Source of the DNA: Macrostomum lignano
Lineage: Eukaryota
DNA length: 64,000 nucleotides
Assembly (NCBI GenBank): GCA_002269645.1
Contig: NIVC01002093.1
Coordinates: 141,485 to 205,484 of the forward strand
Direction of reading: 5' to 3'
Below, in pieces: positions 3,277 to 64,000 of the stretch. A model generated the notes under the pieces. The model was not told where the DNA came from. It searched no databases and worked only from the letters and a program-made list of their open reading frames with translations. Numbering within the stretch: the stretch's first letter is position 1; every line of letters starts with the position of its first letter. The position numbers were made by a program, and so were the translations under genes.

Positions 3277-3756
3277 CAAAATGATCAAAATTTCTTTGGC
3301 CGCGGCCATGGCCCCCTTGCCCCCCCCCCTCTGGATCTGCCCCTGGTGTCAGACAATGTATTTTCGATGGGGAAAAACAAGAAAGGGTTTGCCATAAAAA
3401 ACTATGAGAAACTGTTAAGGTGGACGCCGAAAAAGCGGGCAACCTCAATAAACAACCCACCTCAAAGAGCGCTCAATCTTACTCTCCCCAGTTAATGGCT
3501 CAGCCAATGACGAACGAGTTACACACAGATTCTCGCGGGACCCCTCGCGAGATCTCGCGAGAATTGAGCCTTTCCTCGCGAACCCAACTGTAGATGGTTT
3601 CATGCTCATTCCATGGATGGCAGAATAGCCATACATGATCATCGATGTATTACTTTCCATACATGGACATGTATGATTGTTAATTCTTGCTGTATATACT
3701 ACTCGTTAAGGCACATTTGAGTTTTAAAGAAATAACCAAAAGAACTATAGCTCAAA

Positions 3757-21834: not shown

Positions 21835-22404
21835 TCCTATATACTAAAAATGAGTTGTCTGTGGGTATGCGATAGATTTCAGAAAAATTGGCTCAATCGA
21901 TTTTCTTCAAACTTGCACCATTCGATCAGAAATTTTCCTGGGACGGTACATGCATCTTGGCTAAGAAATTGTTCAATGTTAAAGGGATTAAATATTCGAA
22001 AAACATGCTTTTTTGCAAAGGTCAAGCTAAATTTTCGACTTGAAATGCATTTTAAGAATGCTAGAGAAAAAACAGACTGGCTGAAATCCGATTGTGATAA
22101 AGATTGCATCACAACAAGTTGAAAACAGTGTCAAAGAAATGCACACACGACTTGAATGAAATTGCGTAACCATATTGCCAACTTAAATTGAGACTGATTC
22201 TGGCTGACTGAGAAATTGATTATGTCATAACTTTTTACTCCAATTGACTTGCTGTAAGAATTGAATTATAAGGGCCACAAGTCATGTTCTCCAATTGAAA
22301 AGAGATAGCCGGATGCAAGCAGACTAATGTAGCGACCTTGGTTCGAATCTTAGTAGTGAAAAATGTTTTTTTTTATTAAAACACCTTAAAAAACACAAAA
22401 TGCG

Positions 22405-28919: not shown

Positions 28920-31506
28920 TCACAATATACTAAATCTCTAAGGTTTGACCGGTATTCCAGTCTACAGCCTGAATGCCTGAACCGATTTTTTTCAAACTTG
29001 CTTTATTCAACTCAAAATTCTTGTGAGATTGTGTGGGTGTAATTGCATTGAAAAATTCGAATGAGAAGTTGGTTAAATATTCGAAAAACGAGTTTTCCCA
29101 ATGCTTTCAATGGGAGGCTAGAAAAGGTCAAAATCTCACTAACTGAATTTCAATTCCAATTAAGATTGCGCCACAACTTTTCTCTGTTCACTGTGTACGC
29201 CTCAATACTGGCTGCAATAGGGGAGAGTAAAATAATGCTCAGTGGCTGCGTGTGTACATTCTGACCCTGGCTGACTGGCGGACTGCATAGACAATTGCTA
29301 TTAATAGATTTCACTCAACTGTGCATTGGCTCTGCCTGCACAACCTGTGCACACTGAGCAGCCTATCACTGCTATGTATTTGACTGCAGTGCCGAAGCAT
29401 ATATGGCTGATTTTTGCACCCTCCGATCAGTAGGCGGAATAGCCGCAGTGTAGGCACTAGGACTAGGTTTAAGCTAGGCATAAGGTCCAAGGTTCGAGTC
29501 CGCCTCCCCAGCGGATAATTAAAATTAAATAAATTCATTCATTAGTAGCTTCTGCCTCGACTATTTTGAGCATTTTTAGAATAATTTTTTGCTACTCGCA
29601 CAAGCCAGTAAGCAAATTTGATTTGATTTGAAAAATCCAAAGATCCCATTAATTGTTATTATCTAGGTCTATAGAAGTAGATATTACTAAACTGCAGATG
29701 ATGCTGCTAAACTGCTGAGGTATTGCTAAATGCTGAGTGGTGCAAAAGATTGCCGATATGTGTCGAAAATCTATTAGTGAGCCATAAAATGCTGAGCAAA
29801 TTTTTAAATCATTGAAAAGATCATTGCAGTTTGCTGAAAATACTGAGGGGCCAGCTGAGAGAACTGCAGACTGCTGAGGGGATAAATGAGAATTATTAAG
29901 GAAACACTTGCTGACTGCAAATGAATTGACTGCAGACTACTGAGGGGAACTGCAGATTGTTGAAGGGATCATTGCAGACTGCAAAGGGGACAAACTGCAA
30001 ACTCCTGACGTCGGTTAGTTTCTCGAGACTTATGAGCGTATAAGCTGCAAACTGCCGAGGGGATAGCTGCAGACTGCTAGGATAATAATGGCAGACTTCT
30101 GAGGAGGATATCTAACTGTGAATAATTGTAGCTTGCAGAAGGGACAATTCTGGGTCCCTGAGGGATAAATGAATAATATTAATAAAAGTTGTAGAGTGCA
30201 AATGAGTTGTATGACTGCAGTCTGTTTTGCGGAATTAGAAGGGATAATTTCAGGTTGTTGTGGGGATAACTGCCAATTTCTGGGGAGGGTTTAACTTTAA
30301 ACTTCTGAGGCGATAATAGTAGTCACCTTTTAGCAGTTTGGGAGTGGTGCTAATCTGGGGAGCGGTGCTAATCTAAGGGAGTGGGGCTAATATAAAGGAG
30401 TGGGGGGGGGGCTAATCTGGGGGATTGGGGCTAATCTGGGGGATTGGGGCTAATCTGGGGGATTGGGGCTAATCTGGGGGATTGGGGCTAATCTGGAGGA
30501 AGTAGCGGTGCGAATTTTTGCGGAGTGGTGCAAATCTGGAGAAGTAGTGCTAATCTGGGAAGGTGAAACTATCTGGGAAGCGGCGGTAATCTGTGGAGCG
30601 GTGCTAATCTAGGCTGAGTGCTAATCTGGGCTGAGTGCTAATCTGGGCTGAGTGCTAATCTGGGCTGAGTGCTAATCTGGGCAGAGTGCTAATCTGGGCT
30701 GAGTGCTAATCTGGGCAGAGTGCTAATCTAGGCTGAGTGCTAATCTAGGCTGAGTGCTATCTTAGGCTGAGTGCTAATCTGGGCTGAGTACTAATCTAGG
30801 CTGAGTGCTAATCTGGGCTGAGTGCTAATCTGGGCTGAGTGCTAATCTAGGCTGAGTGCTATCTTAGGCTGAGTGCTAATCTGGGCTGAGTGCTAATCTG
30901 GGCTGAGTGCTAATCTGGGCTGAGTGCTAATCTAGGCTGAGTGCTAATCTAGGCTGAGTGCTAATCTGGGCGCAGTGCTAATCTGGGCTGAGTGCTAATC
31001 TGGGCTGAGTGCTAATCTGGGCTGAGTGCTAATCTGGGCTGAGTGCTAATCTAGGCTGAGTGCTAATCTGGGCGCAGTGCTAATCTGGGCGTAGTGCTAA
31101 TCTGGGCGCAGTGCTAATCTGGGCGCAGTGCTAATCTGGGGGAAGTGGGGCTAATCTGGGGGTGTGCGGCTAATATGGGGGGAGTAGTGCTAATCTGGGG
31201 GAAGTGGGGCTAATCTGGGGGTGTATGTCTAATGTGGGAGAATAGTGCTAATCTGGTGAGGATTTGAAAATAACGAATAGTCATAAAAGAACTATAAATG
31301 AATTGACATTGCAAAGTTTCAAACATTAAGAAATGTAACTTTTTAGAAATTTTTAGTCTCAGTAAAATTGGTGTACAACTGCTTAGAGATTTGCTACTGC
31401 AGAACTGCTCAGAGATTAGTGAGATTTGCTCAGCGACTGTGCAAAACTGCTTATAGACAAGCGCTAAACTGCTAAGAAGCCACCCGGAGGGGGGCTGAAT
31501 GGCTAG
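28920..31506 (+). mobile_element. Complete non-autonomous Helitron with 17-bp array
   Basis: 5' TCACAATATACTAAATC; 3' GCCACCCGGAGGGGGGCTGAATGGCTAG (CTAG at 31503-31506). Confidence 0.82.
30340..31260 (+). repeat. 17-bp minisatellite (CTAATCTGGGCTGAGTG)
   Basis: Direct reading. Confidence 0.96.
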
Positions 31507-34452
31507 TCACAATATACTAAATCTCTAAGATCTGACCGGTATTTCAGTCTACAGCCTGAATGCCTGAACCGATTTTCTTCAAACTTGCTTTATTCAATTG
31601 CAAATTCTTGTGAGATTGTGTGGTTGTAATTGCATTGAAAAATTCGACTGGGAAGATGATTAAAAATTCAAAAAACGAGTTTTCCCAATGCTTTCAATGG
31701 GAGGCTAGAAAAGTTCAAAATCTCACTAACTGAATTTCAATTCCAATTAAGATTGCGCCACAACTTTTCCCTCTTCATTGTGTAGTAGGCCTCAGTACTG
31801 GATGCAGTGTGGAAGGGAGAGAAAAATGCTCAGTGGCGGCGTGTGTACATTTTGCTCTGGCGGACTGCATAGACAATTGCTATTTAAAGATCTCACTTAA
31901 TTGTGCATTGGCTCTGCCTGCATACAACCTGTGCACACTGAACAGCCTATCAATGCTATGTATTTGACTGCAATGCCAAAGCATATATGGCTGATTTTTG
32001 CGCCCTCCAATTAGAAAGCGGAGTAGCTGCAGTGTAGGCACTAGGACTAGGTTTAGGCTAGGCGTAAGGTCCAAGGTTCGACTCTGCCTCCTTGGTGGAT
32101 GATCAAAATTAAATTTATTCATTTATAGCTTTCCCTCAACTAATTGGAATATTTTTGTTGAATTCGCAAGGCACACTTAATGAATAATTTTTGCCATATA
32201 CAAAATTATTCAAATTCACTAAGCAAATTTGATTTGTAAAAAAACTGCTTCGAGCATTACTTATCGCATCAATGGGTATTGCCTACCAGCTCCAAGAAAG
32301 TATGAAATTGCTAAGCTGCTGAATTGGGTGAAAAAATGAATTGGCTGAATTGGGAAAAAACTGCCGATTTGTATCAAAAATTGATTAGTGAACTGTAATA
32401 AATGCTGAGAAAAAATTAAGATTCTTGAAAGGATCCTTTATTTCAGTTTGATAAGTATACTGAGGAGCCCGCCGAGAGGAGAACTGCAGACTGCTGAGGG
32501 GAACTGCAGATTGGCGAAAGGATCATTCATGCAGACTGCAAAGGGGACAAACTGAAAACTGCTTAGGTAGTTCTTCCAGACTTATAAGGCTATAGCTGCA
32601 AACTGCTGAGGGGGACTGCTTCGAGGATTGGTAGACTTCTGAGCTGTTGTTTGCTGAGGGGACAGTTCTAGGCTGCTGAGGAGATAAATGCTTAATAATT
32701 GTTATAGACTGCAAGGGGATAACTCCAAGCTGCTAAGATAATGACTGCAGTCTGTTTTGTAGGATTAGAAGGGATAATTTCAGGTTGTTGTGGGGATATC
32801 TCAGGAATTGCTAAGATGTAATGGCTCTTTGGGGCAATTTCTGAGATTTTAAGGCCCTTGGAGCATTGCTGATATGCCATGTCTTACTGGAAGAATTGCT
32901 TGAATTGAGGTTTCAAAGACTTATGAGGGGAAGTGTTGAGATTACAAAGCTGAAGGGGGGGAAATGCTGCAATTGCTTTCTTTTGGGGGATGCTTGCTAT
33001 TTAGGAATTTAGAATGCGTATTTGTGCCAAGACTGCCGATATGTATCGAAAAGTAGTGAACCGATTAGATAATCGTACTAAATTGTTAGCAAATTTTTTT
33101 TGTAGAAAATATCATTGCAGTTTGCTAAGCAGGAGACTGAGAAGCTGGCCAACAGGAGAACTGCAGATTGTCAAAAGGATCATTCATGCAAACTGCAAAG
33201 GGGACAAACTGCAAACTGCTAAGGTAGTTCCTCCAGACATATAGATCATATCGTCTGAACGATCATATCATAGATGTAAAAATGTGAGATGTGCAGACGG
33301 AGTTCCTCCAGACCATATTCAGAAGCAATGATATGATCTTTGCTCCAGACTTATGAGCGTATGGCTGCAAACTGCTGAGGTGGTAATTGTGGACTACTGT
33401 GGACTGCTGAGTAAATTATTGTTTGCTGTTGGGACAATCTAGGCCGCTAGAATGACTGCAGTCTGTTTTTTGGGATTGGAAGGGATAATTTCAGGTTCTT
33501 GTGGAGACATCTCAGGAATTACTGAGATGTCAAGGCTTACTGGTTGAATTGCTGAGATGTCATGGCTGTTTGGGGTAATTTCTGAAAATTTCAAGGCTCA
33601 TGGGAATTTCTGAGATGTCAAGGCTTACTAAGGAAATTCTTGAGATGTTAAGATGTCAAGGCTTATTGAGAGAATTACTGAGATGTCAAGGCTTATTGGG
33701 GGAATTTCTGAATGGCAAGGCTTATTGGTAGAATTGCTGAGATTTGATGGCTTTTTGGGGTAATTTCTGAGACTTCAAGGCTCACGGAGAATTGCTCAGA
33801 TGTCAAGGCTTACTGGGGGAATTACTGAGATTTCAAGGCTTACTGGAGGAATTTCCGAGATGTCAAGGCTTACTGGCCTAGGAGAATTGCGTAGATGTCA
33901 AGGCTCAAGTTTAATTGCTGATGTCGATGCTTACTGAGGGAATTTCTCAGATGTCAAGGCTCGTGGGGGATGGCTGAATTGTTGAGATATCAAGGCTCAT
34001 TGGGGAGTGGCTGAATTTTTGGGGGGAGGGGGTTAGGTTGTTGAGCGATTGTCAGATCGTCAAGTAGTACGGCTCAAGTGGATCATTTAATTTGATGATG
34101 GAATAGTACACAAAAATAATGCCCATTTCTGCTAATAGGAAATAAAAAAATCAGAGATTGGCATATTGAGCTCCTGCTGCAGACCAGAATATGCCCAAGC
34201 CAATGAAGATATGCACTAAGAGTTTGTGCTTAAAAGGATAAGCACTATTTGCTGATTGAAAAAGGGTTTTAGGCTGATGAAGGAAATATTTTAGGCTGGT
34301 GAAAGTCTTGATTCATTGCAATTTATTTTTGCCAGTAAGCGAAAAAGTAACTTTTGATTAATGGAAATTGAAATTAATGGTTATTCTTGGGTCAAAATAA
34401 AAACCACTTGGTGTCAATTTTAAGGCCCCCCAGCGGGGGGCTAAATGGCTAG
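31507..34452 (+). mobile_element. Complete non-autonomous Helitron
   Basis: 5' TCACAATATACT at 31507; 3' hairpin plus CTAG at 34449-34452. Confidence 0.82.
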
Positions 34453-36507
34453 TCTATATACTAATTTTGCGCTGTATTCGTGCGTGCGTGCGTGTAATTG
34501 ATTTTTTCGAGAATGGCTCAACCGATTGTCTTCAAACTTGCACCATTCGATCAGAAATTTTCCTGGGATGGTGCATCATGCATCTTGGCTAAGAAAGTGA
34601 TCAATATTAAAGGGATTAAATATTCGAAAAACAGGATTTTCTGCAAAGGTCAAGCAGCTCTTTCGACCTGAAATGCATTGTAAGAATGCTAGAGAAAAAC
34701 CTGACTGACTGAATTTCAATTCTGATAAAGATTGCATCACAGCAAGTTGAAAACAGTGCCAAAGAAATGCACACACGACTTGATTTAAATTGCGTAACCG
34801 TAATGCTAACTTAAATTGAGACTGATATTGGCTGACTGAGAAATTGATTATGTCATAACTTTTTACTCTAACCGATTTGCCATAAGAATTGAATTATAAG
34901 GGCCACAATTCATGTTCTCCAATCGACAAGAGATAGCCTAGATGCGAACAGACTGGACTGCTAATTCAGCGACCTGGGTTCGAATCTTAGTAGTGCAAAA
35001 TAATTTTTCATTAAAACATCTTAAAAAATAAATGTTAAACATAAAAGAAGCACAATGTCAAACAAAAATGGCACCATTTCAAACATTAAAGGCCACCATG
35101 TCAAACATATATGTGACTCCATGTCTAACGTTAAAGAGCCACCATGTCAAACAATAAAGAGCCACCATGTCGAACATAAAAGAGCCACCATGTCAAACAC
35201 AAAACAGCTACCATGTCAAACATAAATGGGGTGCCTACTATCTTGGAGTGCTTGCTATCTGGAGATGCGTGCTATCTGGGGGTGCTTGCTATCTAAGGGT
35301 GCTTGCTATTAGGTGGATGCTTGCTATTAGGTGGATGCTTGCTATCTAGGGTGCCTGCTATGTTGGAGTGCTTGCTATCTGGAGATGCGTGCTATCTGGG
35401 GGTGCTTGCTATCTGGAGATGCGTGCTATCTGGGGGTGCTTGCTATCTGGGGGTGCTTGCTATTAGGTGGATGCTCGCTATCTGGGGGTGCTTGCTATTA
35501 GGTGGATGCTTGCTATCTGGAGATGCGTGCTATCTTGGAGTGATTGCTATCTGGGGGTGCTTGCTATCTGGGGGTGCTTGCTATCTAAGGGTGCTTGCTA
35601 TCTAAGGGTGCTTGCTATTAGGTGGAAGCTTGCTATCTTGGGGTGCTTGCTATTAGGTGGATGCTTGCTATCTGGGGTGCCTGCTATGTTGGAGTGCTTG
35701 CTATCTTGAGATGCGTGCTATCTGGGGGTGCTTGCTATCTCGGGGGGATGCTTGCTATCTTGGGGGTTCTAGCTATCTGGGGGTGCTTGCTATTAGGTGG
35801 ATGCTTGCTATCTGGGGTGCCTGCTATCTTGGAGTGCTTGCTATCTGAAGATGCGTGCTATCTGGGGGTGCTTGCTATCTGGGGGTGCTTGCTATCTGGG
35901 GGTGCTTGCTATCTAAGGGTGCTTGCTATTAGGTGGATGCTTGCTATCTGGGGTGCCTGCTATCTGGGGGTGCTTGCTACCTGGGGATGCTTGCTATCTA
36001 AGGGTGCTTGCTATCTTGGGGTGCTTGCTTTCTAAGGGTGCTTGCTATTAAGTGGATGCTTGTTATCTTGGGGTGCTTGCTATTAGGTGGATGCTTGCTA
36101 TCTGGGGTGCCTGCTATCTGGGGGGTGCTTGCTATCTGGAGATGCTTGCTATCTAAGGGTGCTTGCTATTAGGTGGATGCTTGCTATCTTGGGGTGCTTG
36201 CTTTCTAAGGGTGCTTGCTATTAAGTGGATGCTTGTTATCTTGGGGTGCTTGCTATTAGGTGGATGCTTGCTATCTGGGGTGCCTGCTATCTGGGGGTGC
36301 TTGCTATCTGGAGATGCTTGCTATCTGGGGGTGCTTGCTATCTGGGGGGTTGCTTGCTGTCCTGGGATGTTTTCTTTTTGCATTGCACTTCATTTGAGCA
36401 GTTTTTCTATTGTCTATGTGAAGGCTTTATTTGGCCGTCTTTTTGATACTTGTAGAGAGCCAGAGATTCTATCTAGATGCCCCCCATCGGGGGGCGAAGA
36501 TTGCTAG
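34453..36507 (+). mobile_element. Complete non-autonomous Helitron (same family as 21835-25869)
   Basis: 5' TCTATATACTAAT; 3' CCCCCATCGGGGGGCGAAGATTGCTAG|T (CTAG at 36504-36507). Confidence 0.82.
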
Positions 36508-36800: not shown

Positions 36801-37839
36801 GTTTGCAAACAATATTCCTAACAAAAAACATAACGATCCTACCTACATCGCCGAAGAGGTTTACATTATGCTGGTCTGGACCCCTTCTCTTCGGTGGAAA
36901 AAATCAGAAGTAAAAATGCATTTACACACGGGATTTAAAAGAAAGGGCAATCTAACAAACAGTCGGAATCATGTAAATAAATTAAACTAAAAAGTCAGGC
37001 TCATCTGGATGGAATGGTAAGAGATGAGCTCTCCCAGCGAAACAAGTCCACGTGTCACGACTCACCAGCCCTCCCCCATTGTGAAACTTAAAATAAAAAC
37101 GCAGTAAATCAAGGCTGGTCAAGACTTGAGTTATTTAAATCAACACAGAAGAGCCAAAACTTTGCCATATATTTGTCCTTCTACAGTTGCCAACAAACCC
37201 TCCTCCTTTCTCATCCGGGTTTTTGTAAAGACTTCACTTTAAGTGGATGAACGACCCTTTGCGAGAACACGCTAAACGACACAATATACATTTTCAGTCG
37301 ATGCCGAAGTGTGCACGTAACGATTGTGCAATGGATTAGGGGACTGCAAGTCAACGCAAGTTGCAAAGTGATAGAAGCGCACCCATGACAAGTCAGTTGA
37401 GGGGGGGGAAACTAAGCCATAACACGAGGTGCATAGAGTACATTACACACGCAACCCCACCCGCAGCGCACAAGCCAAGTCACCACAATTTTTACCTCTT
37501 ATTTCACAGTATATGAATTCACTATCAATGAAAAGGAACGGAAGAGGTAATCGTCAAGAAGAAACTAACCTCTATCGCTGTACTATAGAGTGTCGTAGTC
37601 GTATCCAAATCCTCATCGGCCATACTAAATCTGAAGAGATAAGTGAGATAAATTCCCGTATTCATCGATACATCGGTCATCGCGAAATCGACCCTCCCTC
37701 CTACCCTCCACCCCTCCCTCCTACCCTCCACCCCTCCCTCTTACCCTCCACCCCTCCCTCCTACCCTCCACCCCTCTCTCCTTCCCTCCACCCCTCTCTC
37801 CTTCCCTCCACCCCTCCCTCCTTCCGGACGGTCCGGACG

Positions 37840-38760
37840 GTCATTGAGTTTTAAGTTTCGGTACGTCCGCTCAAGTACCTCTTACAACTGCCTGTCATAG
37901 GCCTTGGCTGTAAACCCATGGATGTATAGGGCATAGGGCAAGTGCCATTTTCCTAGCGCACGGTGTATGTTCTTGAGCCCTTTCGGAGTCTATTAACTTT
38001 CAGGCGGTGCATCGTTGCGAAGCTGGGACACAATCTTTTTGGATCAACCCGCGGCCGCCTCTACTCCACCCATTCGGCGTGAAATTGGGTGGTCGGGCAG
38101 GCAGTGACGTGAGGTGCGCCCCCGCAGGTAGGGCCCGAACTTTATAGAGATGTCGGGGCCCTGGACGACAACGTCTACCTTAGTAATGTGTTTTCGTTTG
38201 GCATAGGGCTTGCACTTTTGTTTGACCTCTAATTCAGCCTCCTCCTCTTCCGAATCACTCCCGCTGGCCTCTTCTGAATCCGCGTCTGCCTGCTCTTCGG
38301 AGGCCTGGTTGTCCGTTTCGGGTTCGTAGTCCGCATCAAGATCCACATCGTCCATTTCGTGGTCCTCCGACGAATCAGAGTCAGGAGGTACAACAGCCTT
38401 GCGCTTGGGTGCCTGCAATGAATTGGAAGGAAGAAAAAAGTCTATATATGAATGTAGTGGACTAACAGGGCTTACTAGGGTCAATAAAGTGAGCAGAACA
38501 ATCTACTTATGCCCATGTTAAACCATAAGTTGCAGCATCTTGTGAAGCCGGGCCAGCTTATACCGGCCTTCTTCAGTGTTTGGGTAAAGGGCCTCAAAAG
38601 CCGTTTTGAAGGCCTCATTACCGGACAGCAACGTGGAGAGCACGGGCGTGTAAACACTGAGGCACGTAGGCACTAATTTAATCAATTTCCAGCATTTATC
38701 CACAAAATAATTGTGTGTTGTGCCTACTATTTCAAAGATTGAAGTTTCGGTACGTGCGCT
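37840..38760 (-). pseudogene. Degenerate copy or copies of the orphan gene at 40738-44130
   Basis: YTPVLSTLLSGNEAFKTAFEALYPNTEEGRYKLARLHKMLQ (about 38520-38665) and the acidic KRKAVVPP...DVDLDADYEP exon with the following domain align to 42460-42600 and 43540-44130. Contains in-frame stops and a deletion. Confidence 0.8.
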
Positions 38761-40737: not shown

Positions 40738-43700
40738 CTAACGGCGACTGCGTGTCCTCTTTTTATTGGGAGCTCGTGCGTCCGGATTTGTACTCTGGAA
40801 GTATTTTGTTATTATACGGTTTATAATTCGAAAGTCGATTTATACTTTTCTACATTTCTATTGTTAGAGCATTTTTACACACTTACAGCTTTTGGACCGC
40901 TCTGGGTCTGTCCGCTGCCGCTTAGCGACTCGCGTAAGGCGCGGGCTGGCACTATTGTCCGGAGAACTACGGGACGCGGAGGCGGACGCGGAGGCGGACG
41001 CGGAGGCGGACGCGGAGGCCGACTGTGTCGACGCAGTGCTGCATAGAGAAATAAAGAACTGACTGTGAAAAAATTCACCGTGTCTGAAAAAGGTCTGTAT
41101 GAAGGTCAAATATGTGGTAGGAAAATTTTACCTTTCCGTGCCCGTGGGTTCGTCGGCAGCAGTAGTCCCCCTTTTGGCTCGTGAGGGCCTTTTGCCTTTG
41201 CCGGAGGCGGGGGCGAATGCGGCAGCTGTCGCACTGTTGAATGGAGAAATATAGAAGTAAGTGTGAAATTAATTGACAGTATTCAAAAATATCTGTATGA
41301 TGCTCAAATATGCGATAGGATAATCTTACCTTTCCCTGCTTGTGGACTGCTTGGTGGCAGCGCTCTCCTTACCAGGTGCGCGCTTTTTGCCTCTGCCTGA
41401 GGCGGGAGCGGATTCGTCTGAGGCGGGGGCGGATTCGCCGGCCGTCGCACTGTTAAATGGAGAAAAATAGAGGCAAGTGTCGAAATAATTGACAGTATCT
41501 AACAATGTCTGTATGATGGTCAAGTATGTGGTAGGAAAATTTTACCTTTCCGTTCTGGTGAGCGCTCGCGCGTCGGCAGCGGCAGTGTCCCTGTCTGCAA
41601 TTCCTGGCGCACTGTTGGATGGAGAAATATAGAAAGAAGCATGAAAACAATTGACCTAGTGTAAAGGTGTCTCAATGATGGTGAGTTTTGTCGTGCGAAG
41701 AATTTACCTCTGTCTGGCTGAGGGCACTAGGGCGTTGGCGGCAGTCTTTGAGATCGTGGAGGGCTCCGTCGGCGCTTGGGCGTCGGCGACGGACTTGGCG
41801 ATTTTGACGGCTGGGCGTCAGAACTAGTGGTTGGAAGGAGATAGATATGATGGCGTAAAGCATTGATCAGGCTATAGGATACCTGTATGTGGGTTAATTA
41901 ATTAATAAGTAGCATTTTAACTGCTCGCAGCCGAAGCATTGCGCCTCTGCGACTGAGGAGAAGTCTCTTTTTGCTTCCTTGCCCGGCGCTGTGCTGTCAC
42001 AGTGTCGTCAATCTAAATAATTGGCGAATAGTTTTGGTGCATTTTCAGCTGGCGATACAGAATAGGTTCTTTGAACCTATTTAGTCCTTATCTAAATTCA
42101 ATTTATGATGAATGGCTTGGAGAATACGAAGAAGGATTAAAAACTCGAGTTCAATAAACATTTACGCTTGGAGTCAATGAAGTATGCTGTAATATAACAC
42201 TTACCCATTGGACCTGCAGATTTTCCTTTATCACCTCGGCCTTTAACTGTCTTGCAAACAGCGTCTCGTGGGTCCTTAATTGGCTTGGGCTCGGCTCATC
42301 GGGCATTGGAACGTAGTGGGGTAAGCAGGCATAGTCGAAACGCTCTTGATCGGAGGCAGCGTTGGCATACTTGCTCACAGTTTCATGCAGCACTCGTAAG
42401 TTGGCTCCCATCTTCATAGTAAGATTACATAACAAAGCCACGAGGTCGGGCGCTTCCATATATTGCAGCATCTTGTGAAGCCGGGCCAGCTTGTACCGGC
42501 CTTCCACAGTGTTTGGGTAAAGGGCGTCAAACGCCGTTTTGAAGGCCTCATTACCGACAGCAACGTGGCGAGCACGGGCGTGTAAACGTGCTGCCAACGG
42601 CTTGGAGGCGTGGTAACGAAAGAACCGAACTCGTCTACTCTGCCCCAATAGCGGAACGGGCTGACGAAAACGTTGTGAGCCGGCGCTTCCGCTGCTGTGG
42701 CCGCCGCTGCCGTGTCTGCAGGCGCACTCGCTGCTGCTGCTGCTGCTTCTTCTTGCAGACGCACCGTCTTCTTTTAGGTTCATTTTTTCTAAGGCTGCAC
42801 AGGTCGAAGGAGCGCTGCAGAAAAGCAAAAAATGACAGATTTAGTTTTGATATACTCGTACATGTCAATACGACGCTTGTAACATTTTATGTACGTAAAC
42901 TTTTAGCGGGGTACGTACACGTGCGTACATTTGGATACCCAGTATACTGGATATGGAGTAGTGCCATTGAATTCAAAGAAAAGGTTCAAATTTGGATTGT
43001 GATAATTTTAAAACTTTAAACAGATTTTCTTAAATGCGGCAACAATGAGAATTGCGCTTTTAGTGCCGCGAAATTAACATCATTAGTTTACAGTTCCCAT
43101 GGTAAAATTTTTCTGTGTAAGTCAGAAAGTGACTAGTTAAGGGCTATATTCAAGATAATTAAGATAAACATAATATGCGGTAGCGTGCTTACCACACCCG
43201 GAACTCTGCTATGCTGCGCGTCGGCCCCGGCGCTAGCGACGCGTTGAGCTGCACCGTCCATGAAGCGTTCGGCGGCGGCCTTGACATGGTCGGGGACGGG
43301 CCGTTCCGGGTCCAGCCCGACCAACTCCGCAAAGTACATATATACTTGATCGCGGAAATCCTCCGCCGCCTGAACGACATCTTTGCCCAGCTCGATCAGC
43401 GCGTCTGCTTCTTCTTCGGTGATGGGTGCGTACCACATTAGGTTGTCTGCTGCAATGAGTTCGTCGTTTGGCGCCCGTCGCAAATGCTGCTCAGGGCGCG
43501 AAAAGAAGTATCTGTAGAAATAATCTGGACGCTCATTGAGATTCAAGTTTTGGTACGTTCGCTCGAGTACTTGTTGCAACTGCCTGTCATAGGCTTTCGC
43601 CGTAAAGCCGTGAATGAATAGGGCGTATGGCAAGTTGTCGAAGTAACAGAGCGCTGCTGTGCCATTTTCCGAGCGGACGGTGTACGTTCTAGAGCCCTTT

Positions 43701-44130
43701 CGGAGTCTATTGACTTTGAGGCGGTGCGTTGTTGCCAAGCAGGGACAAAGTATTCTCGGATCAACCCGCGGCCGCCTTAACTCCACCCATTCGGCGTGGA
43801 ATTCGGTGGCCGGGCAGGCAGCGACCTGAACTTCGCCCGCGAAGGTAGGGCTCGCACTTTATACTGATGTCCGGGGCCCTGGAGGACAATGTCTTTCTTA
43901 GTAAGATATTGTCGTTTCTTATAGGGCTTGCGCTGTTGCTTCACTTCTTTTTCGGCGTCCTCCTCTTCTGAGTCACTCTCCCTGGCCTCTTATAAATCCG
44001 CGTCGGCCTCCTCTTCGAACGCTTCGTTCTCCGGATTGGGTTCATAATCGGCATCGAGGTCGACATCATCAGTGACGCGCTCCTTGTCCGATGAATCAGA
44101 TGATTCCGGAGGTACAACGGGCTTGCGCTT
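40738..44130 (-). pseudogene. Orphan multi-exon gene: acidic N-terminal segment, globular domains, basic low-complexity exon-repeat tail
   Basis: Predicted exons at about 44130-43190, 42825-42204, 42010-41920, 41611-41546, 41449-41330, 41233-41132 and 41038-40893, mostly with GT-AG borders. Stop near 43990 and a 1-bp deletion near 42556. No family recognised. Confidence 0.65.
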
Positions 44131-45026
44131 TAAAAATAAGACTCGAAACTTAGAAAATAAAAGTAGAAACTGCTGGGCTCACCGAATGTGCTCACCATTC
44201 GGACGGCGGTCAGGAAAAATGACGATGCGAGCATCACCCAGCTCGGGCTGCTCCTTTATTCGCTGCTTTGTAGCTTTCAGGCTCCGCACATATGAATTGC
44301 AATCGTGCAGCACGGCCTGCAGCAGGTTCAGCAGATCCCGATCCAGATGCTCACTGAGCTTCAAGCGATTCTCCAGCTCCTTTTCAGTGTAGTACACCTG
44401 CCAGCCATGCGCCACAGCCTGTTCACAAGCGTACAGAGGCGGAATGTTGTGGAACAGCTCACCACTGAGGATGAAGTTCGGGCAGTAGCCTCTTGTCGGT
44501 CTCAGGTTAGCCTTTATCGACGTGAGGTGCAGCGCAGCGTTGTAACTTCTGATGTTCTCCAGGAAATCGCGGCTTAGAGTGTGGCGCCCAGCAGATGCAG
44601 AATGCGCTCATGCAGAACTGCTGGTACGATCTTCACGGGTAGCTTGAGCTTGCCGGCTGCACAGCAGAGTCCTGGCGCCTCGCCTTCCCAGCGCAGAGCA
44701 CTGCATTGTCCACAAGGCAAACACATCCGGCCCAGCTGATGCGCCTGTGTTCAGGCTTAAATGGCCTGTTGAAAGTGAAAGCGAGAAATAAGATAAAAAT
44801 ATTAATAAACTAAACAGTAGTTTTCAGACAAAAAAACTTTGCTCACAGGGCTTCTTCATCTGAAAAATCTGAAGCGTCAGACGCCATGCTGACATCAGGC
44901 AGGAGTGAGCTAACACGCTTAGGAGTCCGGTTGGCCCAGAAGCTAGTGGTGGAAAAGCGAATGAGAAAATTTATACACTACTGAAACTTGGAGCATAGAA
45001 AACTTGAGATCTATACTCACTCGGTG

Positions 45027-45691: not shown

Positions 45692-46045
45692 TGAGGTGGC
45701 GGTTGTACAGCAGCCGCACTGTGGATAGATAGCATAGTCGACATCAAGCAGCTGGTTCAGCAAGGCCGCAATGAAATCATGGACCTCAACTCTATCTCGC
45801 TGTGTGTCATGAAGAACTCCTTCGACTGTCAGTCTGTCAGCCTGTAGCAGTTCTCGTTGTGCTTCAACAAAGGGCGAGACCGCTCACTAATAAGCTGCCG
45901 TAGCTGCTGGGGAGTCAGGTTGCTGTAAACTGGAGTTCCAATCAAATGGTGCTGTACAGCATAAAACCAGCAGTTGCCATCACCGGACATCGAGATGACT
46001 TGCGAGGCACTGATGGGCACAGTTCTAGGCGTAGATGACACGAGA
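45692..46045 (-). pseudogene. OTU cysteine protease-like exon of the Helitron
   Basis: SGDGNCWFYAV (catalytic D..C) and VRLLYNRHLRHYY (His motif), with frameshifts between them. Confidence 0.8.
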
Positions 46046-46086
46046 CTGCGAGATTTTTATGTGTAAAAAAGGAATATTTGTCCTTG

Positions 46087-48052
46087 TTAGCATTGTATCA
46101 CGCTGGCGCGCGTTAGATGCACGATTTACTGTGCGTCTAATGTAGGTGTCTATGGCAATTTTCTATCTGAGTAAAGGCAACAAGCGTGCGTCTAACGCGT
46201 GCGTGTAATGCGCGGAAAGTGAGTATATTTTAATAAGTATACTTCTGCTACAAGTACAACGAACGAATAACAGGGAACTGTGTAAACAAGGTAGACTGCG
46301 TAGACGATTACCTATCATTGACAGGGAAAGCGAATGAGGATGAAGGCGTTCTGCATTTGGAAGTTCAGTGTGGGAAAATTATTACTCATTGTTATTACTC
46401 ACTCTACGAATTGAACGTGCAGTTGTTGACAGTGTTGTAGAAGTTATAAACCACAGTTGGTTTCTTCTTGGCGTCATCACTTGGCGTCCCACCAGCAACG
46501 TCCGACGTGTCAGAAATAATCAGTGACTGGCTCATGACGGTAGAAGAGTCTTTCATAATCACGTCTTGCATGGAATCATCCTTGTGTAGTGCAGAAGCCA
46601 AGCTGACCGACATGTCTCGCATTTCGCCGTCCCTTCTGGAGCCAAAGCGTAAGTAGCGTTCTACAGTTCGCGTCTGCTTATGGCCAGTGACTTTGCAGAT
46701 ATCGGACGCGCTGTAACCTGCGTTAGATAGCTCCTTTATTACCGTGGATCGAATGCAGTGCGCAGTGTATGACTTTGATAAATTCGCCTTCTTTGAAATG
46801 ACGGTCATCAGCTGGCCCAAAGGATTCACACCAATTGCCTTGTTCGGGCAGTACCATGCTCCATTCGCCCAACCAGTCTTTTTCGGCAGTAAGAAGAAAG
46901 GATATCTTTTCGCCGTCTCCGAACTGCTTGATGGAATGGATTGCTCACGCTTAGCTAAATAGAGCTTCATAGCTTCCACAGGGCAGCGGCTTCTGTCTGG
47001 CAACGCACTCATAATAGCTTGCTTGACATCGTCACACGAGTTCCTGGAGAGTTCTTTGCCAATATTCTTTACTGTTCCAGCAACAAAGCGCACCACTTCA
47101 ATCCCATCGGAATCCGTCTCAAATCGAAAGGAATCATCGCTCAGTGAACGGATCCACTCGCGACCTCTGTTTCCAAAGTAGAAAATAACGTTGTAGTACA
47201 CTTCATGAAGTAGCACCTCTGGAGATTTCCGATCGAAGTAGTCAGACAGCCTCTTCAGATCAACAGGCTCGATCGATTGGAAGTGTCGGGCGCGTCCGCC
47301 TCGGGCAATGAAGATTCTGCCCATTGACTTCAGTGTCGTATTGGAAGCATAGAATGCGTCGTCAGTTAGAATATTGATTCGCCTTGTCGACATGAAATGC
47401 CGGTAGAGCGCAGCTCGGATACAAATCAACGTGGCTGGAGCAAAGTATTCGTCATTCCTCTTGCGAAGTGAGCCATAGAAGTATCGCAATAGACTGTCGA
47501 TCTCGCGCGGTGTAGAAGTCGCCAAATCACGCTGAACTGACGGATGGTTCTCCATGAAGCTCTGCAACTTACCGACATAATATTCGGTAGCCTTTGTCAC
47601 ACTTTTACTAGCAGCGGTGTCCTCGATTTCGGGAACGAGCTGTTCCAATTCAAGTAGTTCAGCTTCTTCGTCAGGTATCTTCTTGAAAAGTGCCTCCAGA
47701 AGATCCTCCTCTTCTCGATCAATTGCCGACTCCGGTAGATTATCAGGCTCGTTCAGAATGTCGTCAATCTCATTGGTGGACAAGCCGGAAATCATTTCGT
47801 TTGGAAATTTGCTCAGATTCAGAAGTCTGACTTTAGTTGGTGGCTCAGCCATATTCTCTCACAAGTGATTTTAATTTAACAGCTTCTTATTCCCTTCTTC
47901 GCAACACTCAATCAACTTGCGTGCCTTTCACGCATTTTTGTCTATGGTTAAGACAAATTAACTGAGCGTGCATCTAACGCGCCATCTAAAGTATTAAGCC
48001 AACGTAATACAATGCAACTCATACATCAACGAGCGCACGAGTGCCATAGACC
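46087..48052 (-). mobile_element. Crypton-like DNA transposon (boundaries approximate)
   Basis: Recombinase ORF flanked by inverted blocks: 46108-46123 versus 47967-47982 (16-bp perfect) and 46090-46102 versus 48003-48015 (one mismatch). Confidence 0.7.
46404..47852 (-). CDS. Crypton-type tyrosine recombinase (DUF3504/KCTD1-ZMYM-related), intact 482-aa intronless ORF
   Basis: Catalytic residues in order: FGNRGRE (R), GTVKN (K), AHCIRST (HxxR), TGHKQ (H), ERYLR (Y). Upstream YFAPATLICIRAALYRHF and F..SN..LKSM helices are typical of Crypton recombinases. Confidence 0.9.
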   Translation of the reverse strand: MAEPPTKVRLLNLSKFPNEMISGLSTNEIDDILNEPDNLPESAIDREEEDLLEALFKKIPDEEAELLELEQLVPEIEDTAASKSVTKATEYYVGKLQSFMENHPSVQRDLATSTPREIDSLLRYFYGSLRKRNDEYFAPATLICIRAALYRHFMSTRRINILTDDAFYASNTTLKSMGRIFIARGGRARHFQSIEPVDLKRLSDYFDRKSPEVLLHEVYYNVIFYFGNRGREWIRSLSDDSFRFETDSDGIEVVRFVAGTVKNIGKELSRNSCDDVKQAIMSALPDRSRCPVEAMKLYLAKREQSIPSSSSETAKRYPFFLLPKKTGWANGAWYCPNKAIGVNPLGQLMTVISKKANLSKSYTAHCIRSTVIKELSNAGYSASDICKVTGHKQTRTVERYLRFGSRRDGEMRDMSVSLASALHKDDSMQDVIMKDSSTVMSQSLIISDTSDVAGGTPSDDAKKKPTVVYNFYNTVNNCTFNS

Positions 48053-48754
48053 ATTTAAGCACGCAAAATCGATGTATGAATCCTACATAGTAGTATATTA
48101 GCTCGAAGTATAAAATCAAGTACTTAGTCTACAAAAAATTCAAAACATTCTTACATGTTGTTGCACCTTTCGTAACTAAATACTCTCGGTAGTGCTCCCT
48201 TTCAGCTTGCAGTCTGGCATCTCGCGCAGCGGGTGACTCTTCTGCTCTACGCTGACCTGAGCGCTCCCTTTCAGCTTGCAGTCTGGCATCTCGCGCAGCC
48301 GGTGACTTCTGCTCTACGCTGACCTGAGCGCTCTCGCTCGGCTTGCAGTCGAGCGTCACAAACTGTCGGAGATTCTGCAGCAAGGCGTCTCTGCTTCCCC
48401 TGTCGCCTTTCTTGCAGGCGCTGCTCCCGAACGTCAGCAGTCTTCTATCTACGGCGCTTTTCTGACTCGCGATTTTTCTGGGCAGCGCTTTTAGCTCGAC
48501 GGTAAGCCATCAGAGTTAACCGTAGATTAACGACTTTTGCGATCCACGCAACTTTCGTCAACTCAAGCAATAGATCAATGGAGCCGTTCGAAGGAGCAAA
48601 CAAAGAAGATGTTGTTAGTCTGCGGACCCGAGTCATAACTGGCTCCGACTGCGAACAAAAAAATGCTAAAACACTAAAAGCATAGGCAAAAACAGGTTTT
48701 ATCAACTTTAAAGGGACATCGTTGTAAATATCAACAATCAAATTAGTCAAGCAT

Positions 48755-49094
48755 GATGCTTGCTGTTTTGGGGATGCTTCCTGTATGGGGATTGCTTGCT
48801 GTCTGGGGAATGCTTGCTGTCTGAGGGATGCTTGCTGTCTCCCCCAGCAAGTTTGGTTCTTTGAGTTAGGCTGATAAAGAGGGTTCTAAGGCTGTGAGCT
48901 CCTGCTGTAGACCAGAGTATGCCCCGGCCAGTAACAATATGCACTAAGAGTTTCTGCTTGAAAGGATAAGCACTATTTTCTGAATAAGAAAGGGTTTTGG
49001 GTTGATGAAGGAAACTTTTTTAGCTGATGAAAGTTTTGATTCATGGAAATTTGGTGTCATTTTTAAGGCCCCCAGCGGGGGGCTAAATGGCTAG
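48755..49094 (+). mobile_element. Helitron 3' fragment in opposite orientation to the gene block
   Basis: 18-bp repeats, shared subterminal sequence, CCCCCAGCGGGGGG hairpin plus CTAG at 49091-49094. Confidence 0.8.
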
Positions 49095-49419
49095 TCGGCC
49101 TCGACGCTATGGCAGTTGTGTGTGAAGCGTGACCTCTCGATAGTAAAATTGTGTCTATTTTCGTCCAAAAACCAATTCAAAACGGCTAGGACACAACTTC
49201 CCAGACGGGAATTGATCACTAATTGATTCTAGGGATTTGTGTCATAGGCATTTTCCACTTGGCGCAAGCCAAATGATGACCATAGACTAAACGTCTGGGA
49301 CGAAAAGTTAAGCGAAACAGTCTGAAATTACCATAGACGAAACATGTTAAATGAAGTTGTGGTCTTATAAGCTGGAACTCTGCAGCAGAGGATACATGTT
49401 CCTGTTTCTCCTGTTTGCC

Positions 49420-50608
49420 CTAACCTCTATTCATGTCACTCATACGAATGATGAATTGGTCGAACTTGCTGATTGAAAGCATTGTCGGCTTGAATGGAAA
49501 TGTGGTCAACTTTCTCAGCGACTTGAGTATGGGTGGACGTGACGAGGCGAATGACGAAGAGTTGATGGAGTTCATCCGATTCATTGAATGCGGTAACGAT
49601 GATGCTCTTGCACCACTGCCAAGCGAAGAAGAGGCTTGCCCCGAGGATCCCATGCGGAACAAACCATGCAATTCGGCCGATGTGAGTGTAACGTCTAAAG
49701 ACATGAATGAACTGTCGATTTTAGCTTTACTCATCGAGTATTGCGGAACAATGGGTCCATGATTCATTATGCCCACGTTGCCGTTTTCGTATATGTATAC
49801 AATCTGTTTATTCAGCTTTGTTGTATGGAATAAAAATATCCTCGCAAACGCATTGATACAGGAATATACAGATTTCTCATCTGCAAATGAATATCCAAAT
49901 ATAACCCGTTGGGAATATCCAAAGATGGGGGGCGGCTTGACCATAGACTATTCGCAGATAAGCAATCTGTTGTATTCCTGTTTCGATGACTGAAAGGCGC
50001 GCAAAAATTTACTTATTTCACAAATTCCGTCGACACAATCGTTTGTGGCCCAAACGAAACTAGGCACAATAGGCCAGAGCTTTCTGAATTGTTGGAGTAA
50101 AGTAAATTGCGGGTCCAAAAGACCCATTTGAACCAGCGAGAAAGCCATTTGAGAATATTCAATGGATATTGGCGGCACGCGTTTCATGAAAGAGCAGCCT
50201 AGGAAAGTATGGTGAATCGTGACGATTTTGCCAATGAAGTTCGAATCGCTCCTCAAGAGTCGGGTTTTTCACCTTCTTTATGTCCACAAGTTTCAGTGGG
50301 CACGAAGAAAGTTAGTTTTTAACTTCCCAGAAGTGAGGATCGTCCTCAGACATGCGCGAGAGTTTGTACGCTTGGCCACACGGAGGCTGTGCGTTCCTAT
50401 TTCCGCTTTTCGCCAAAGGTTCACCATGGCTTTGCAAGTTTTCATAACGCTTGCGAAAAGCGTCGGCCGTCACGCTTGCCCAGTGGCTTCCTAGCTGGTT
50501 AATAAAGCGCTCTCGGACTCCACTCCAATTCACGACGGGTTTAGTGCATAGCGCCACCAATCGAAACAAGAGATCATCGAGCTCACTGGTCCACTTGGTG
50601 TAGTCCAT
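49420..50608 (-). pseudogene. Myb/SANT-like domain fused to a PARP-like ADP-ribosyltransferase domain, disrupted and intronless
   Basis: MDYTKWTSELDDLLFRLV...VNWSGVRERF...FRKRYENL (Myb-like). Same frame across a stop: VDIKKVKNPTLEERF...RLLFHET (50180-50191)...IFSNGF..GSNGSFGPAIYFTPTIQKALAYC. After a frameshift: RLLICE*SM.KP...GY...DEKSVY (49864-49881). Confidence 0.78.
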
Positions 50609-50934
50609 TTTATACGATTACTTGTTTTGTTGCTGCAATATAATTATGGCATTTCACAGTCAGTTTAACCTTAAGAAGTCGGGAAGGTCATTTCGACCAC
50701 TTACAACTCCCCAGCGCAGTCGGTTCAAAATATCTATGACCAGCGCACAAATTCTATACCCACCGTTCCAGTCGGCTATGGATCGAACTCGACCAAAAAT
50801 AGAAGTAAAGCACACAAACTTTGCAAAGATGGTTCGTATTACCAGTAAAAACAATAACAAACCAGCAAACATAGCGGGAAAGTTTCATTCAAATTTCGAA
50901 AGCATTCAAAGCTTTCTAGCACCTTAGAAGATGA

Positions 50935-51555
50935 CTAGCCATTTAGCCCCCCTCCGGGTGGCTTTTTAGCAGTTTAGCGCTTGTCTTTCCCTTTCTCAAT
51001 TAGCAAATAGTGCTTATCCTTTCAAGAAAAAAATCTTAGTGCGTATTGTCATTGGTCTAGTTATATTCTGGTCTGCAGGAGCTCAATACGCCAATCCCTG
51101 ACGGCCTTAGACCCCTCTTTATTAGAATCAAACCTTTAATAAATACGCTGGTATTTCCTTTTAGCAGAAATTAGCATCACTTACGTATACTTTTTCATTA
51201 TCTGAATTAAATGAGCTACTTAAGTCGTACTACTTGACTATCTGACAATCGCCCAGAAATCTACCCCCTCCCTCAACAATTCAGCCATCCCCCATGAGCC
51301 TTGACATCTCAGCAATTTCCCCAGTAAGCCTTGACATCTCAGCAATTCCCCCAGTAAGCTTTGACATTGCAGCAATTATGCTTGAGCATCAACTTTAAAG
51401 GGACATCGTTGTAAATATCAACGATCAAATTAGTCATGCATACTCCCGTAAACATTTCCAATAGAATAAAGCAAGTTTGAAAAAAATCGGTTCAGGCATT
51501 CAGGCTTCAGACTGAAATACCGGTCGGATTTAAGAGATTTAGTATATTGTAATGA
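50935..51555 (-). mobile_element. Complete 621-bp non-autonomous Helitron
   Basis: Minus-strand 5' TCATTACAATATACTAAATCTC; 3' GCCACCCGGAGGGGGGCTAAATGGCTAG|T. Confidence 0.82.
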
Positions 51556-52854: not shown

Positions 52855-55622
<2,768 letters not shown>

Positions 55623-61754: not shown

Positions 61755-64000
61755 TCTCTACATATAAAAATCAAAACTCTGTCTGTCTGTCTGTCTGTGT
61801 GTGGACAATTTTGATCGCTATGGACTCCCAAACCGCTCAACCAAATGACACCAAACTTTACACCCACCCTAAACTTACTACGGAGAATGTCTAAGGCTAC
61901 CTATTAATTTCCTAGACTCAAGTCTTCCTACCTAAAAGTACAAAAAACTGCTCAAAATGCGCGATTTTTTCACTAAATCCTCCATAGCGCCGCTCCACTT
62001 CGACCGATTCTCTTCAAATTTGACACAGGCAATTTTCAACTATTGTGACACAATCGTGTAAAATTTCAAATCTCAAAGTTAATCCTGAGCGGTGCTGTGC
62101 ACTTTTAAAGTTAGGCTGTTTTTTTCAGCGTAGCAACCACCCCAACCTCCGCCCGCCTGCCTCTCTTTCCCGATCTGGGCCCAGATGTGTAAAAGGGTTT
62201 CAAAATTGACTAACTTTCAGCTGCCATAAGTTTGCTCCACGTAAAGCGATTGACTTCAAACTTGACACAATTCTTCATTGACTCATTCTCTATCTAAATG
62301 TCAAGTTTCAACTCTGTAACTCAACCGAAAAAGAAACTGTAAGCATGTGAAGTTTGTCTGCTTTATCTGTTGTTTGTGCCACTCACTCATTCCCCCAGAG
62401 CCAGACGAAGGGTCAGGCGATAGGGCTCAATGTACATAGCGAATGTACAGTGTTTTGGAATAGCCTTCTCTGTACCCCCGCGAGTGGAGAGGCGTGGAGA
62501 GGAGAGAGTTTAGCCAGAGATTCAACCACTGTCCTCACTCCTGTATAAGACAAGTCTGCAGGAGTTAAACAAGGATGGTAAATCAAGGCGATGTGGGATG
62601 GTTTGTAAAAATAGCAAAAAATTAATGATTACAATGAACTGATTACAATGCAATTTTACTAAATTGCTTACACCATGAAAATTTTAACATTAAGATACGA
62701 ATAAGGTACTTGAAAATTTAAATAACCTCCTAAGAAATGCGTATTTCCTTGGTTGTTAGACTGCTGCAGACTGTGGTGGTGGAGCTAGAGAATGGAGATA
62801 CACAAATTCCTCTCAGGACTGCTAATTGGCCAGAAAGAGCACGAGAAATTATAACAACCATGATAGTACCACATCCCACAAACTGGCTTTCGAAGCAGGG
62901 ATCGGCAGATTTTTATCTCAAAGGCCAGATAAAGAATCAAGCTTATAGCTGCAGGGCAGATGAGAGTGAAAAGGAAAAGGAATAGACTATTAGAAAGGGA
63001 GGAAAGGCGAGAGGGGATAAAAGAATAGATAGAAGATATTAGGAGAGACGAGGGGGTCGAGGGCAGAGCAGAGAATATGGGAGTCGGGAGGAAGAAGCGA
63101 GAGGAGAGAAGAGAGAAGGGAGATGGAATTAGAGGTGAGAAGATGGAGAGAGAAAAGGGGAGAGATGAGACAGAGGATCAATGAGAGAGGAGAGTAGAGA
63201 AGAGTGAGAAGAGATGAGAGATAAGAGAACAGAGAGGCAGATGAGAGAGGATCGAGAGGAGAGATTAGAAAGGATAGAGAAGAGAGGAGATAAGAGGGGG
63301 ATAGAAGGGAGAGAGAGGAGTGAGAAGAGGAGATAAGAGATGAGAGAGGGAAGAGTGAGAAGATGAGATAAGATATAAGATATTAGAGATAAGAGAGAGA
63401 GAGAGTCGAGAAAGAAGAGAGGAGAAAGGAGAGATGATAGAGTAAAGGGAAAAGGAGGAGAGAGGAAAGAGATTAGATTGTGGAGATGAGAGAGATGAAA
63501 AAAAGAAGATTGTGAGAGTAGAGATGAGAGATGAAGGAAGAGAGAGCAGAGTGCAGAGAGACGAGAGAAGAGAATAGAGGGGAGAGAGTATAGAAGAGGG
63601 AAGAAGAGAGAGGAGTAAGGAAAGAGGGGTGTCAGAAAGGGGAAAGAGAAGAGTACACAGTAGAGAGGAGAGTAGAGATGACAGAAGAGAGAGGGGAATG
63701 AGAGAGCGAAGATGAGAGTGAACAGACGATATAAGAAAGGAGAGAGGAGAGTGAGAAGAAGAGAGAAGACAAGAGAGGGAGAGAGTATAGAAGAGAGAAG
63801 TGAAGAGACAAGAAGAAAGAATTGAAAGGATCGAGTCCTCCTGAGTCAAAAAAGGGGAAAGAGAGGAGTACAAGTGGAGAGAGGTGAGAGAACATATGAG
63901 AGTAAAGATGACAGAACAGAGAGGGGAGATAAGAGATCAGAACAGACTAGAGATGGAAGAGTAGAGAGAAAAGAGGAGAGATAAGAAATAAGAGATAAGA
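61755..64000 (+). mobile_element. Second copy of the 52855 Helitron-like family
   Basis: Same 5' terminus and collinear body. Confidence 0.75.

Follow-up and report, generated by a model that had tools for sequence, protein, structure and literature searches.

The 64,000-nucleotide stretch of Macrostomum lignano DNA analysed here (the window) carries, on its minus strand, what is probably a dead pseudogene, present once, from a PARP-family gene not known from elsewhere, around which Helitrons have accumulated. Judged from its sequence, the locus is a pseudogene without a present role as a protein, and it encodes a predicted PARP-type ADP-ribosyltransferase domain for which statistical support covers the first ~100 residues only. 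The pseudogene is held in a short island of unique sequence with transposon-dense surroundings (Table 1).

The assignment to the PARP family comes from profile searches. The stretch from LSSCPL to AYCA, translated with the internal TGA read as X and otherwise unchanged, matched the Pfam PARP profile PF00644 with E = 2.1e-11 and 44.1 bits (curated gathering cut-off 26.7 bits), covering profile positions ~21-103 of 199. The stop-masked full-length reading gave E = 9.6e-11, and repaired variants scored 45-58 bits against the same profile. The HMMER check with PF00644 that an initial annotation of this DNA had proposed thus came out in favour of the domain. In a phmmer search of PDB chains, the top matches were ZAP/PARP13, PARP1 and PARP10, at weak E-values of 0.02-0.1 and with ZAP scoring best. 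The alignments paired LLFHET with LLWHGS, FGPAIYFT with FGKGIYFA, QKALAYC with SKSANYC, and LLICEVSM with ILLGEVAL (PARP1). The catalytic His, Tyr and Tyr were correctly placed in pairwise alignments to PARP1, PARP10 and ZAP; their counterparts in PARP1 are H862, Y896 and Y907. Two neighbouring positions differ from the usual residues: Glu takes the place of the Gly that follows the His (H-E-T versus H-G-S/T), and Ala that of the Ser before the second Tyr (QKALAYC versus SKSANYC). In active PARPs, both the Gly and the Ser are nicotinamide contacts.

The candidate central strand, NRLLICE, lies beyond the damaged part of the reading frame. When it was joined in the frame of the initial annotation with PARP1-like spacing, the Pfam score rose from 44 to 57.7 bits and the match reached profile position 120, a gain that hinges on trimming of the spacer (gap repair) and is lost with the longer spacer. 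Another frame for this strand (IAYLRIVYG) was rejected, as it gave zero gain in Pfam score.

The initial annotation had described a full His-Tyr-Tyr-Glu layout. The His, Tyr and Tyr of this layout stand on the profile match given above, but the Glu region matches no profile or structure. Profile positions 120-199, which include the catalytic Glu region, were not aligned in any PF00644 search of the repaired variants, and the C-terminal part alone matched no Pfam family and, by sequence, no PARP chain in the PDB. An AlphaFold single-sequence model of the C-terminal stretch had a pLDDT of 35 and was unusable. The third triad residue, on the last PARP strands, is Glu in some PARPs and Ile, Leu or Tyr in mono-transferases. 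By eye, DEKSVY...NAFARIFLFH can be matched, free of gaps, to the ending typical of tankyrase-type PARPs, EY[VI][VI]Y...QAYP.YLI.Y (EYVIY...QAYPEYLITY). This gap-free register favours the choice of Glu made in the initial annotation, as a lead only. Placement of RIFLFH by eye on the PARP10 strand IFVIFH was dropped for the DEKSVY register, which keeps the spacing of the QAYP-like motif; both placements are without statistical support. Partner domains of the WGR, macro, WWE, ankyrin or zinc-finger type were not detected.

The peptide strings quoted in the initial annotation were all present on the minus strand at their given places, and the ORF list contains fragments of the gene only. Three-frame translation allowed the whole reading to be followed. 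Frame A opens with an ATG at 50608 (MDYTKW; MDYTKWTSELDDLLFRLVALCTKPVVNWSGVRERF...AFRKRYENL...FWEVKN) and, after 98 codons, meets a TAA at 50314-50312; it continues beyond this stop from LSSCPLKLVDIKKVKNPTLEERF to LLFHETRAANIH (whole run LSSCPLKLVDIKKVKNPTLEERFELHWQNRHDSPYFPRLLFHETRAANIH) up to a TGA at 50161-50159, and then through IFSNGFLAGSNGSFGPAIYFTPTIQKALAYCA up to a TAG at 50062-50060. Beyond a +1 frame change, it leads through ...QSSKQEYNRLLICE to a TAG at 49950-49948. The final 175 codons, SMVKPPP...FADEKSVYSCINAFARIFLFHTT (DEKSVY)...MNRG, are open down to the stop at 49420. The three stops listed in the initial annotation (50312, 50159 and 49948) are therefore in place, but the extra TAG at 50060 brings the count to four. 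Its single frameshift was likewise found, as the +1 frame change within the damaged spacer (49969-50062), which is ~22 codons longer than the matching PARP1 loop.

A 49-nt GT..AG segment within the spacer (50012-50060, minus strand) is a candidate very short intron: once it is excised, the TAG at 50060 is gone and the frame is whole again, so that some of the apparent damage might be intron. The Pfam score did not rise when this segment was excised, and even if the intron is granted, three different stop codons are left. An intron across the first stop was rejected by our own reasoning, since it would delete the first PARP strand, which the Pfam profile matches. The TGA stands opposite a conserved Gly and the last TAG directly follows a conserved strand, which marks both as true lesions that an intron would not explain. 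Since it combines a frameshift with four in-frame stops, of which two interrupt conserved PARP elements, the sequence is read as a pseudogene, and the hidden working gene of the initial annotation is not borne out.

A 17-mer, ATGACCATAGACTAAAC, is present in three copies (82-100% identity) at 49276-49292, 49327-49343 and 49937-49953, the third of which contains the in-frame TAG at 49948-49950. These copies may be due to chance, or to a small conversion or insertion that made the TAG.

Table 1. Features of the PARP-like locus and its surroundings (positions are those of the window).
Feature	Position	Strand	Remarks
PARP-like pseudogene, whole	49420-50608	-	~380-396 codons after stop read-through and frame correction (three-frame translation)
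N-terminal open stretch, 98 codons	50315-50608	-	Three-helix Myb/SANT-like pattern (W6, W27, R..RY), then linker
Stop 1, in-frame TAA	50312-50314	-	In linker immediately 5' of first PARP strand
PARP catalytic domain, first part	50063-50311	-	LLFHET (His), GPAIYFT (Tyr), LAYCA (second Tyr)
Stop 2, in-frame TGA	50159-50161	-	Within conserved helix RAANIH*IFSNGF; opposite Gly of PARP1 (FAGILSQGL)
Damaged spacer	49969-50062	-	Contains stop 3 (TAG 50060-50062) and the +1 frameshift
NRLLICE, candidate central beta-strand of PARP fold	49951-49971	-	Counterpart in PARP1 LILLGEV
Stop 4, in-frame TAG	49948-49950	-	Directly 3' of conserved strand
C-terminal open stretch, 175 codons	49420-49947	-	DEKSVY, ARIFLFH, then Ser-rich tail
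Tyrosine recombinase ORF, intact, 482 aa, Crypton-like	46404-47852	-	Pfam Phage_integrase, DUF3504, QRICH1
RepHel N-terminal remnant, 142 aa, IRSYN..TS motif	44182-44607	-	Helraiser 7LCC residues 176-290, E = 2.8e-5
OTU-like GDGNC motif	45832-46056 (motif 45984)	-	Weak, Pfam E = 0.056 only
RPA-like OB-fold fragment, 92 aa	52518-52793	-	Pfam REPA_OB_2 E = 4.4e-9; upstream of pseudogene
Unique island, 1,836 bp, holds pseudogene	49097-50932		Bounded by 32-nt inverted repeat, which is two Helitron termini
Helitron A, complete, internally deleted, non-autonomous, ~620 bp	50934-51555	-	5' TC..ACAATATACTAAAT, 30-bp minisatellite, GC hairpin, CTAG
Helitron B, 5'-truncated 3' fragment	48851-49095	+	Hairpin and CTAG

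The region ahead of the PARP domain had been assigned to the Myb/SANT family. The W..L..W..R.RY pattern is indeed present in the N-terminal stretch, but the best score with Pfam Myb_DNA-binding (PF00249) was 20.1 bits (E = 6.9e-4) over a partial profile, below the cut-off of 24.4. An AlphaFold single-sequence model of the N-terminal fragment predicted helices at residues 3-20, 28-39 and 48-60 with a mediocre pLDDT of 65. In a Foldseek search of the PDB, this model gave a best E-value of 0.4 and no match at E <= 0.001, the top matches being winged-helix folds, and phmmer of the region against the PDB returned zero matches. The Myb/SANT domain is accordingly no more than a candidate here, with the residue pattern retained as an observation. 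Literature searches for an architecture combining Myb and PARP gave nothing relevant.

Relatives of the gene were sought at several levels. Neither the repaired 396-aa protein nor the repaired PARP part had a match in a word-indexed collection of 5.8 billion proteins, the PARP part not even at E <= 10. As this search depends on words of 5 residues in common, it would miss very distant PARPs. An exhaustive search of 1.84 billion representative proteins with the exact 98-aa N-terminal ORF gave no match, no relative came up when metagenome and viral contigs were scanned with back-translated patterns, and an exact look-up of the window ORFs returned no record. For the copy search by tBLASTn that the initial annotation had proposed, the outcome within the 64-kb window was one copy of the PARP-like gene, the decayed one, and no intact copy. 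The terms 'single copy' and 'no relatives' as used here refer to the 64-kb window and to the public protein and contig collections that were searched. As a sequence without detectable relatives, the locus may represent an undescribed PARP lineage.

The borders of the island are Helitron termini. The sequence GGGGCTAAATGGCTAGT occurs 7 times in the window, compared with 0.13 expected, and is preceded by a GC-rich hairpin ~10 nt before the CTAG 3' end, with hairpin z from -2.2 to -3.4. Together, GGGGCTAAATGGCTAGT, the GC hairpin and CTAG are a canonical Helitron 3' end. The hairpins of the two termini that flank the island are significant (z = -2.3 and -3.4). A 5' motif, TC..ATATACTAAAT, also recurs, and directly follows CTAG at four sites. 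The 3' end of Helitron A aims at the gene and stops ~325 bp upstream of its ATG, before the island. That of Helitron B lies ~325 bp past the stop codon of the gene, on the strand opposite to Helitron A, and is aimed back at the gene. Both of these 3' ends have the gene on their downstream side and are oriented towards one another, so that neither of the neighbouring Helitrons includes it. At the five remaining Helitron termini of the window, no copy of the PARP-like gene is present, and no similarity was found between the island and the Helitron units.

The sequence that follows the CTAG of Helitron A opens with TC, as it does where other Helitrons of the window are joined head to tail. The island was rejected as the start of a Helitron unit, as the resemblance of its first 400 nt to Helitron 5' regions was at the level of shuffled sequence. 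The reading of position 51556, upstream of Helitron A, as a degenerate Helitron 3' end was also discarded (no hairpin, z = -0.25).

Elsewhere in the window, Helitron-like units of ~2.9 kb form a head-to-tail array on the plus strand (18874-21835, 28920-31507 and 31508-34453), with CTAG|TC joints and a 30-bp minisatellite in each, and further Helitron termini are located at 3756 (minus strand) and 34437 (plus strand). A segment of ~56 nt, of which 32 nt are identical, is found exactly twice, at 48701-48757 and 51385-51440 (both minus strand), flanking the island. Each copy adjoins a different minisatellite, and the flanks are otherwise unrelated.

Downstream of the pseudogene, the next intact ORF on the same strand is that of the tyrosine recombinase, 1.6 kb away and ahead of the RepHel remnant. 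Its homologues share 30-54% identity. Over residues 9-92, the recombinase is identical at 83 of 84 positions (99%) to the C-terminal end of a 'protein kinase' that UniRef lists as a gene model of Macrostomum lignano, a match that points to a young multi-copy element and a chimeric annotation, and to M. lignano or a close relative as the probable host. The RepHel remnant is 4.8 kb from the pseudogene and comprises the pre-Rep-domain region only. No Rep or helicase Pfam domain was found in the three minus-strand frames from 46.4 to ~41.7 kb, and Rep, helicase and Walker A motifs were found nowhere in the window. The initial annotation had located the gene between a Helitron 3' end and a RepHel gene on the same strand. 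A 3' end ~325 bp upstream and an N-terminal RepHel fragment on the same strand agree with this description, but the next gene is the tyrosine recombinase and the RepHel is a stub of 142 aa.

Two further repeat pairs are dispersed in the window. One (43524-44130 and 37832-38406, 78% identity) starts, with its first member, ~50 bp below the end of the RepHel remnant at 44182 and runs into the N-terminal part of an unassigned 241-aa ORF (43136-43858); this repeat may have truncated the RepHel remnant. The other pairs 52855-53962 with 61755-62846 at 84% identity.

In one alternative, an old autonomous Helitron included the PARP-like gene as an accessory ORF. This element would have started at the CTAG|TC after Helitron A, with the Myb-like PARP first and OTU-RepHel next, and later insertions, those of Helitron B and the tyrosine-recombinase element among them, would have broken it up. 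The PARP pseudogene and the OTU-like and RepHel N-terminal fragments do lie on one strand within 6.5 kb, all three are similarly fragmentary, and the CTAG|TC junction type is found at four other Helitron ends in the window. Moreover, RPA-like and OTU genes occur in known Helitrons, and Helitrons are able to capture genes of the host. With the RPA-like fragment upstream and the OTU-like and RepHel fragments downstream, all on the same strand, the region has the look of a decayed autonomous Helitron with an extra gene, which keeps the idea of a cargo gene alive. However, the minus strand downstream has no matching 3' end, the next terminus being inverted, and the start of the island resembles Helitron 5' regions no better than shuffled sequence. 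The abundant Helitron family of the window never carries the gene, the protein collections without a relative include M. lignano gene models, literature searches for a Helitron with a PARP or ADP-ribosyltransferase gene yielded nothing relevant, and an unrelated younger element, the tyrosine recombinase, sits between the pseudogene and the RepHel remnant. We therefore regard this alternative as unlikely. As the gene is outside both Helitrons, the RepHel is a stub and there is no second copy or relative, the locus offers no positive evidence for cargo. The transposon cargo suggested by the initial annotation is not supported: the gene is not enclosed by the 5' TC and 3' hairpin-CTRR ends of one element, and is not repeated with the seven termini of the window. 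The fuller proposal, that an ancestral autonomous macrostomid Helitron carried a DNA-targeted PARP-type ADP-ribosyltransferase (a helical DNA-binding module plus PARP) as an accessory gene, of which the locus is the fossil, appears more doubtful still.

The gene might otherwise be the remnant of another kind of insertion, either a host PARP gene retrocopied by LINE machinery or sequence that travelled with the adjoining Crypton-like element. Obvious long introns are absent, non-LTR reverse transcriptases are present in the window, and the same-strand recombinase gene is close by, all of which are compatible with such an origin. On the other hand, the island has neither a poly(A) tract nor a target-site duplication, and no host PARP is similar enough to be detected as the parent. 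The recombinase is intact and ~99% identical to another genomic copy, whereas the PARP gene is heavily decayed, so that the two are of different ages. We give this origin only a small chance. Least probable of all is a live gene whose lesions are assembly errors, short introns or stop codons that are read through. It could draw on the 49-nt GT..AG segment, which removes one TAG and restores the frame, on the frequent indel errors of long-read assemblies, and on the 175-codon stretch that is still open. Against it stand the three different stops that are left, of which one faces the conserved Gly of the helix and another immediately follows the conserved strand, the lack of any improvement in profile score upon removal of the intron, and the unrecognizable last third of the domain.

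Under the preferred explanation, a dead PARP-family gene surrounded by Helitrons, the ancestral product would have been an NAD+-dependent ADP-ribosyltransferase of ~380 aa with a PARP fold, and its N-terminus would have been a small helical targeting module, possibly Myb/SANT-like. The two changed NAD+ contacts may have arisen by decay after the death of the gene, or the protein may already have been a catalytically doubtful 'pseudo-PARP'. The flanking Helitrons would have inserted independently around this older sequence.

The wider window contains further mobile-element sequence. ORFs for the reverse transcriptase and RNase H of non-LTR retrotransposons, together with one of 279 aa that has a SAP domain (E = 2e-13), are located at 5139-5825 (plus strand), 26151-28756 (plus strand) and 5822-6661 (minus strand). 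Between 54000 and 64000 there are long simple-sequence tracts, purine-rich on the plus strand, with an extreme strand skew (GC skew up to 0.87); the minus strand is CT-rich there and gives rise to long spurious Ser/Leu-rich ORFs. Scans of the window for Rfam families and tRNAs gave no match. Repeats make up more than half of the Macrostomum lignano genome, in which simple and tandem repeats account for 15% (PMC5730564), and the tandem-repeat-rich window fits this genome.

In its present state, the locus is a fossil PARP-family gene, broken and set in a graveyard of transposons, and its value is mainly for annotation. Two of its aspects are not ordinary, namely the absence of relatives and the adjacent same-strand remnants of Helitron proteins. 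Should intact copies sit inside Helitrons elsewhere, this would be, to our knowledge, the first Helitron with its own ADP-ribosyltransferase, and such copies would establish a new class of chromatin or repair modifiers that are encoded by transposons and stem from a PARP lineage without described relatives. Such a finding would bear on how transposons manipulate the DNA-repair or chromatin responses of the host.

Compared with known PARPs (PF00644, with ZAP/PARP13, PARP10 and PARP1 as the nearest structures), the locus shares the order of elements: a strand, a helix, the His in 'hhFH.T', the Tyr in 'G.GIYF', the second Tyr in '..YC' and the 'LL..E' strand. It differs from them in its very low pairwise similarity (best PDB E ~0.02), in having Glu for Gly and Ala for Ser, in its unrecognizable last third and in its broken frame. 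An altered set of NAD+-contacting residues on a PARP fold is also seen in ZAP/PARP13 and TASOR, which have catalytically inactive 'pseudo-PARP' domains (PMC7532188). However, these pseudo-PARPs are intact, conserved and functional, whereas the locus is a nonsense-interrupted single copy without detectable relatives. With respect to Helitron gene capture, read-through capture starts directly downstream of the Helitron 3' terminus (PMC4778049), and the pseudogene likewise lies immediately downstream of a hairpin-CTAG terminus. It differs in that no recognizable Helitron has its two ends on either side of the pseudogene, and in that the pseudogene is not repeated with the copies in the window. 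A last likeness is to the accessory genes of Helitrons, which include RPA-like and OTU genes: RPA-like, OTU-like and RepHel remnants are all found near the pseudogene, on the same strand.
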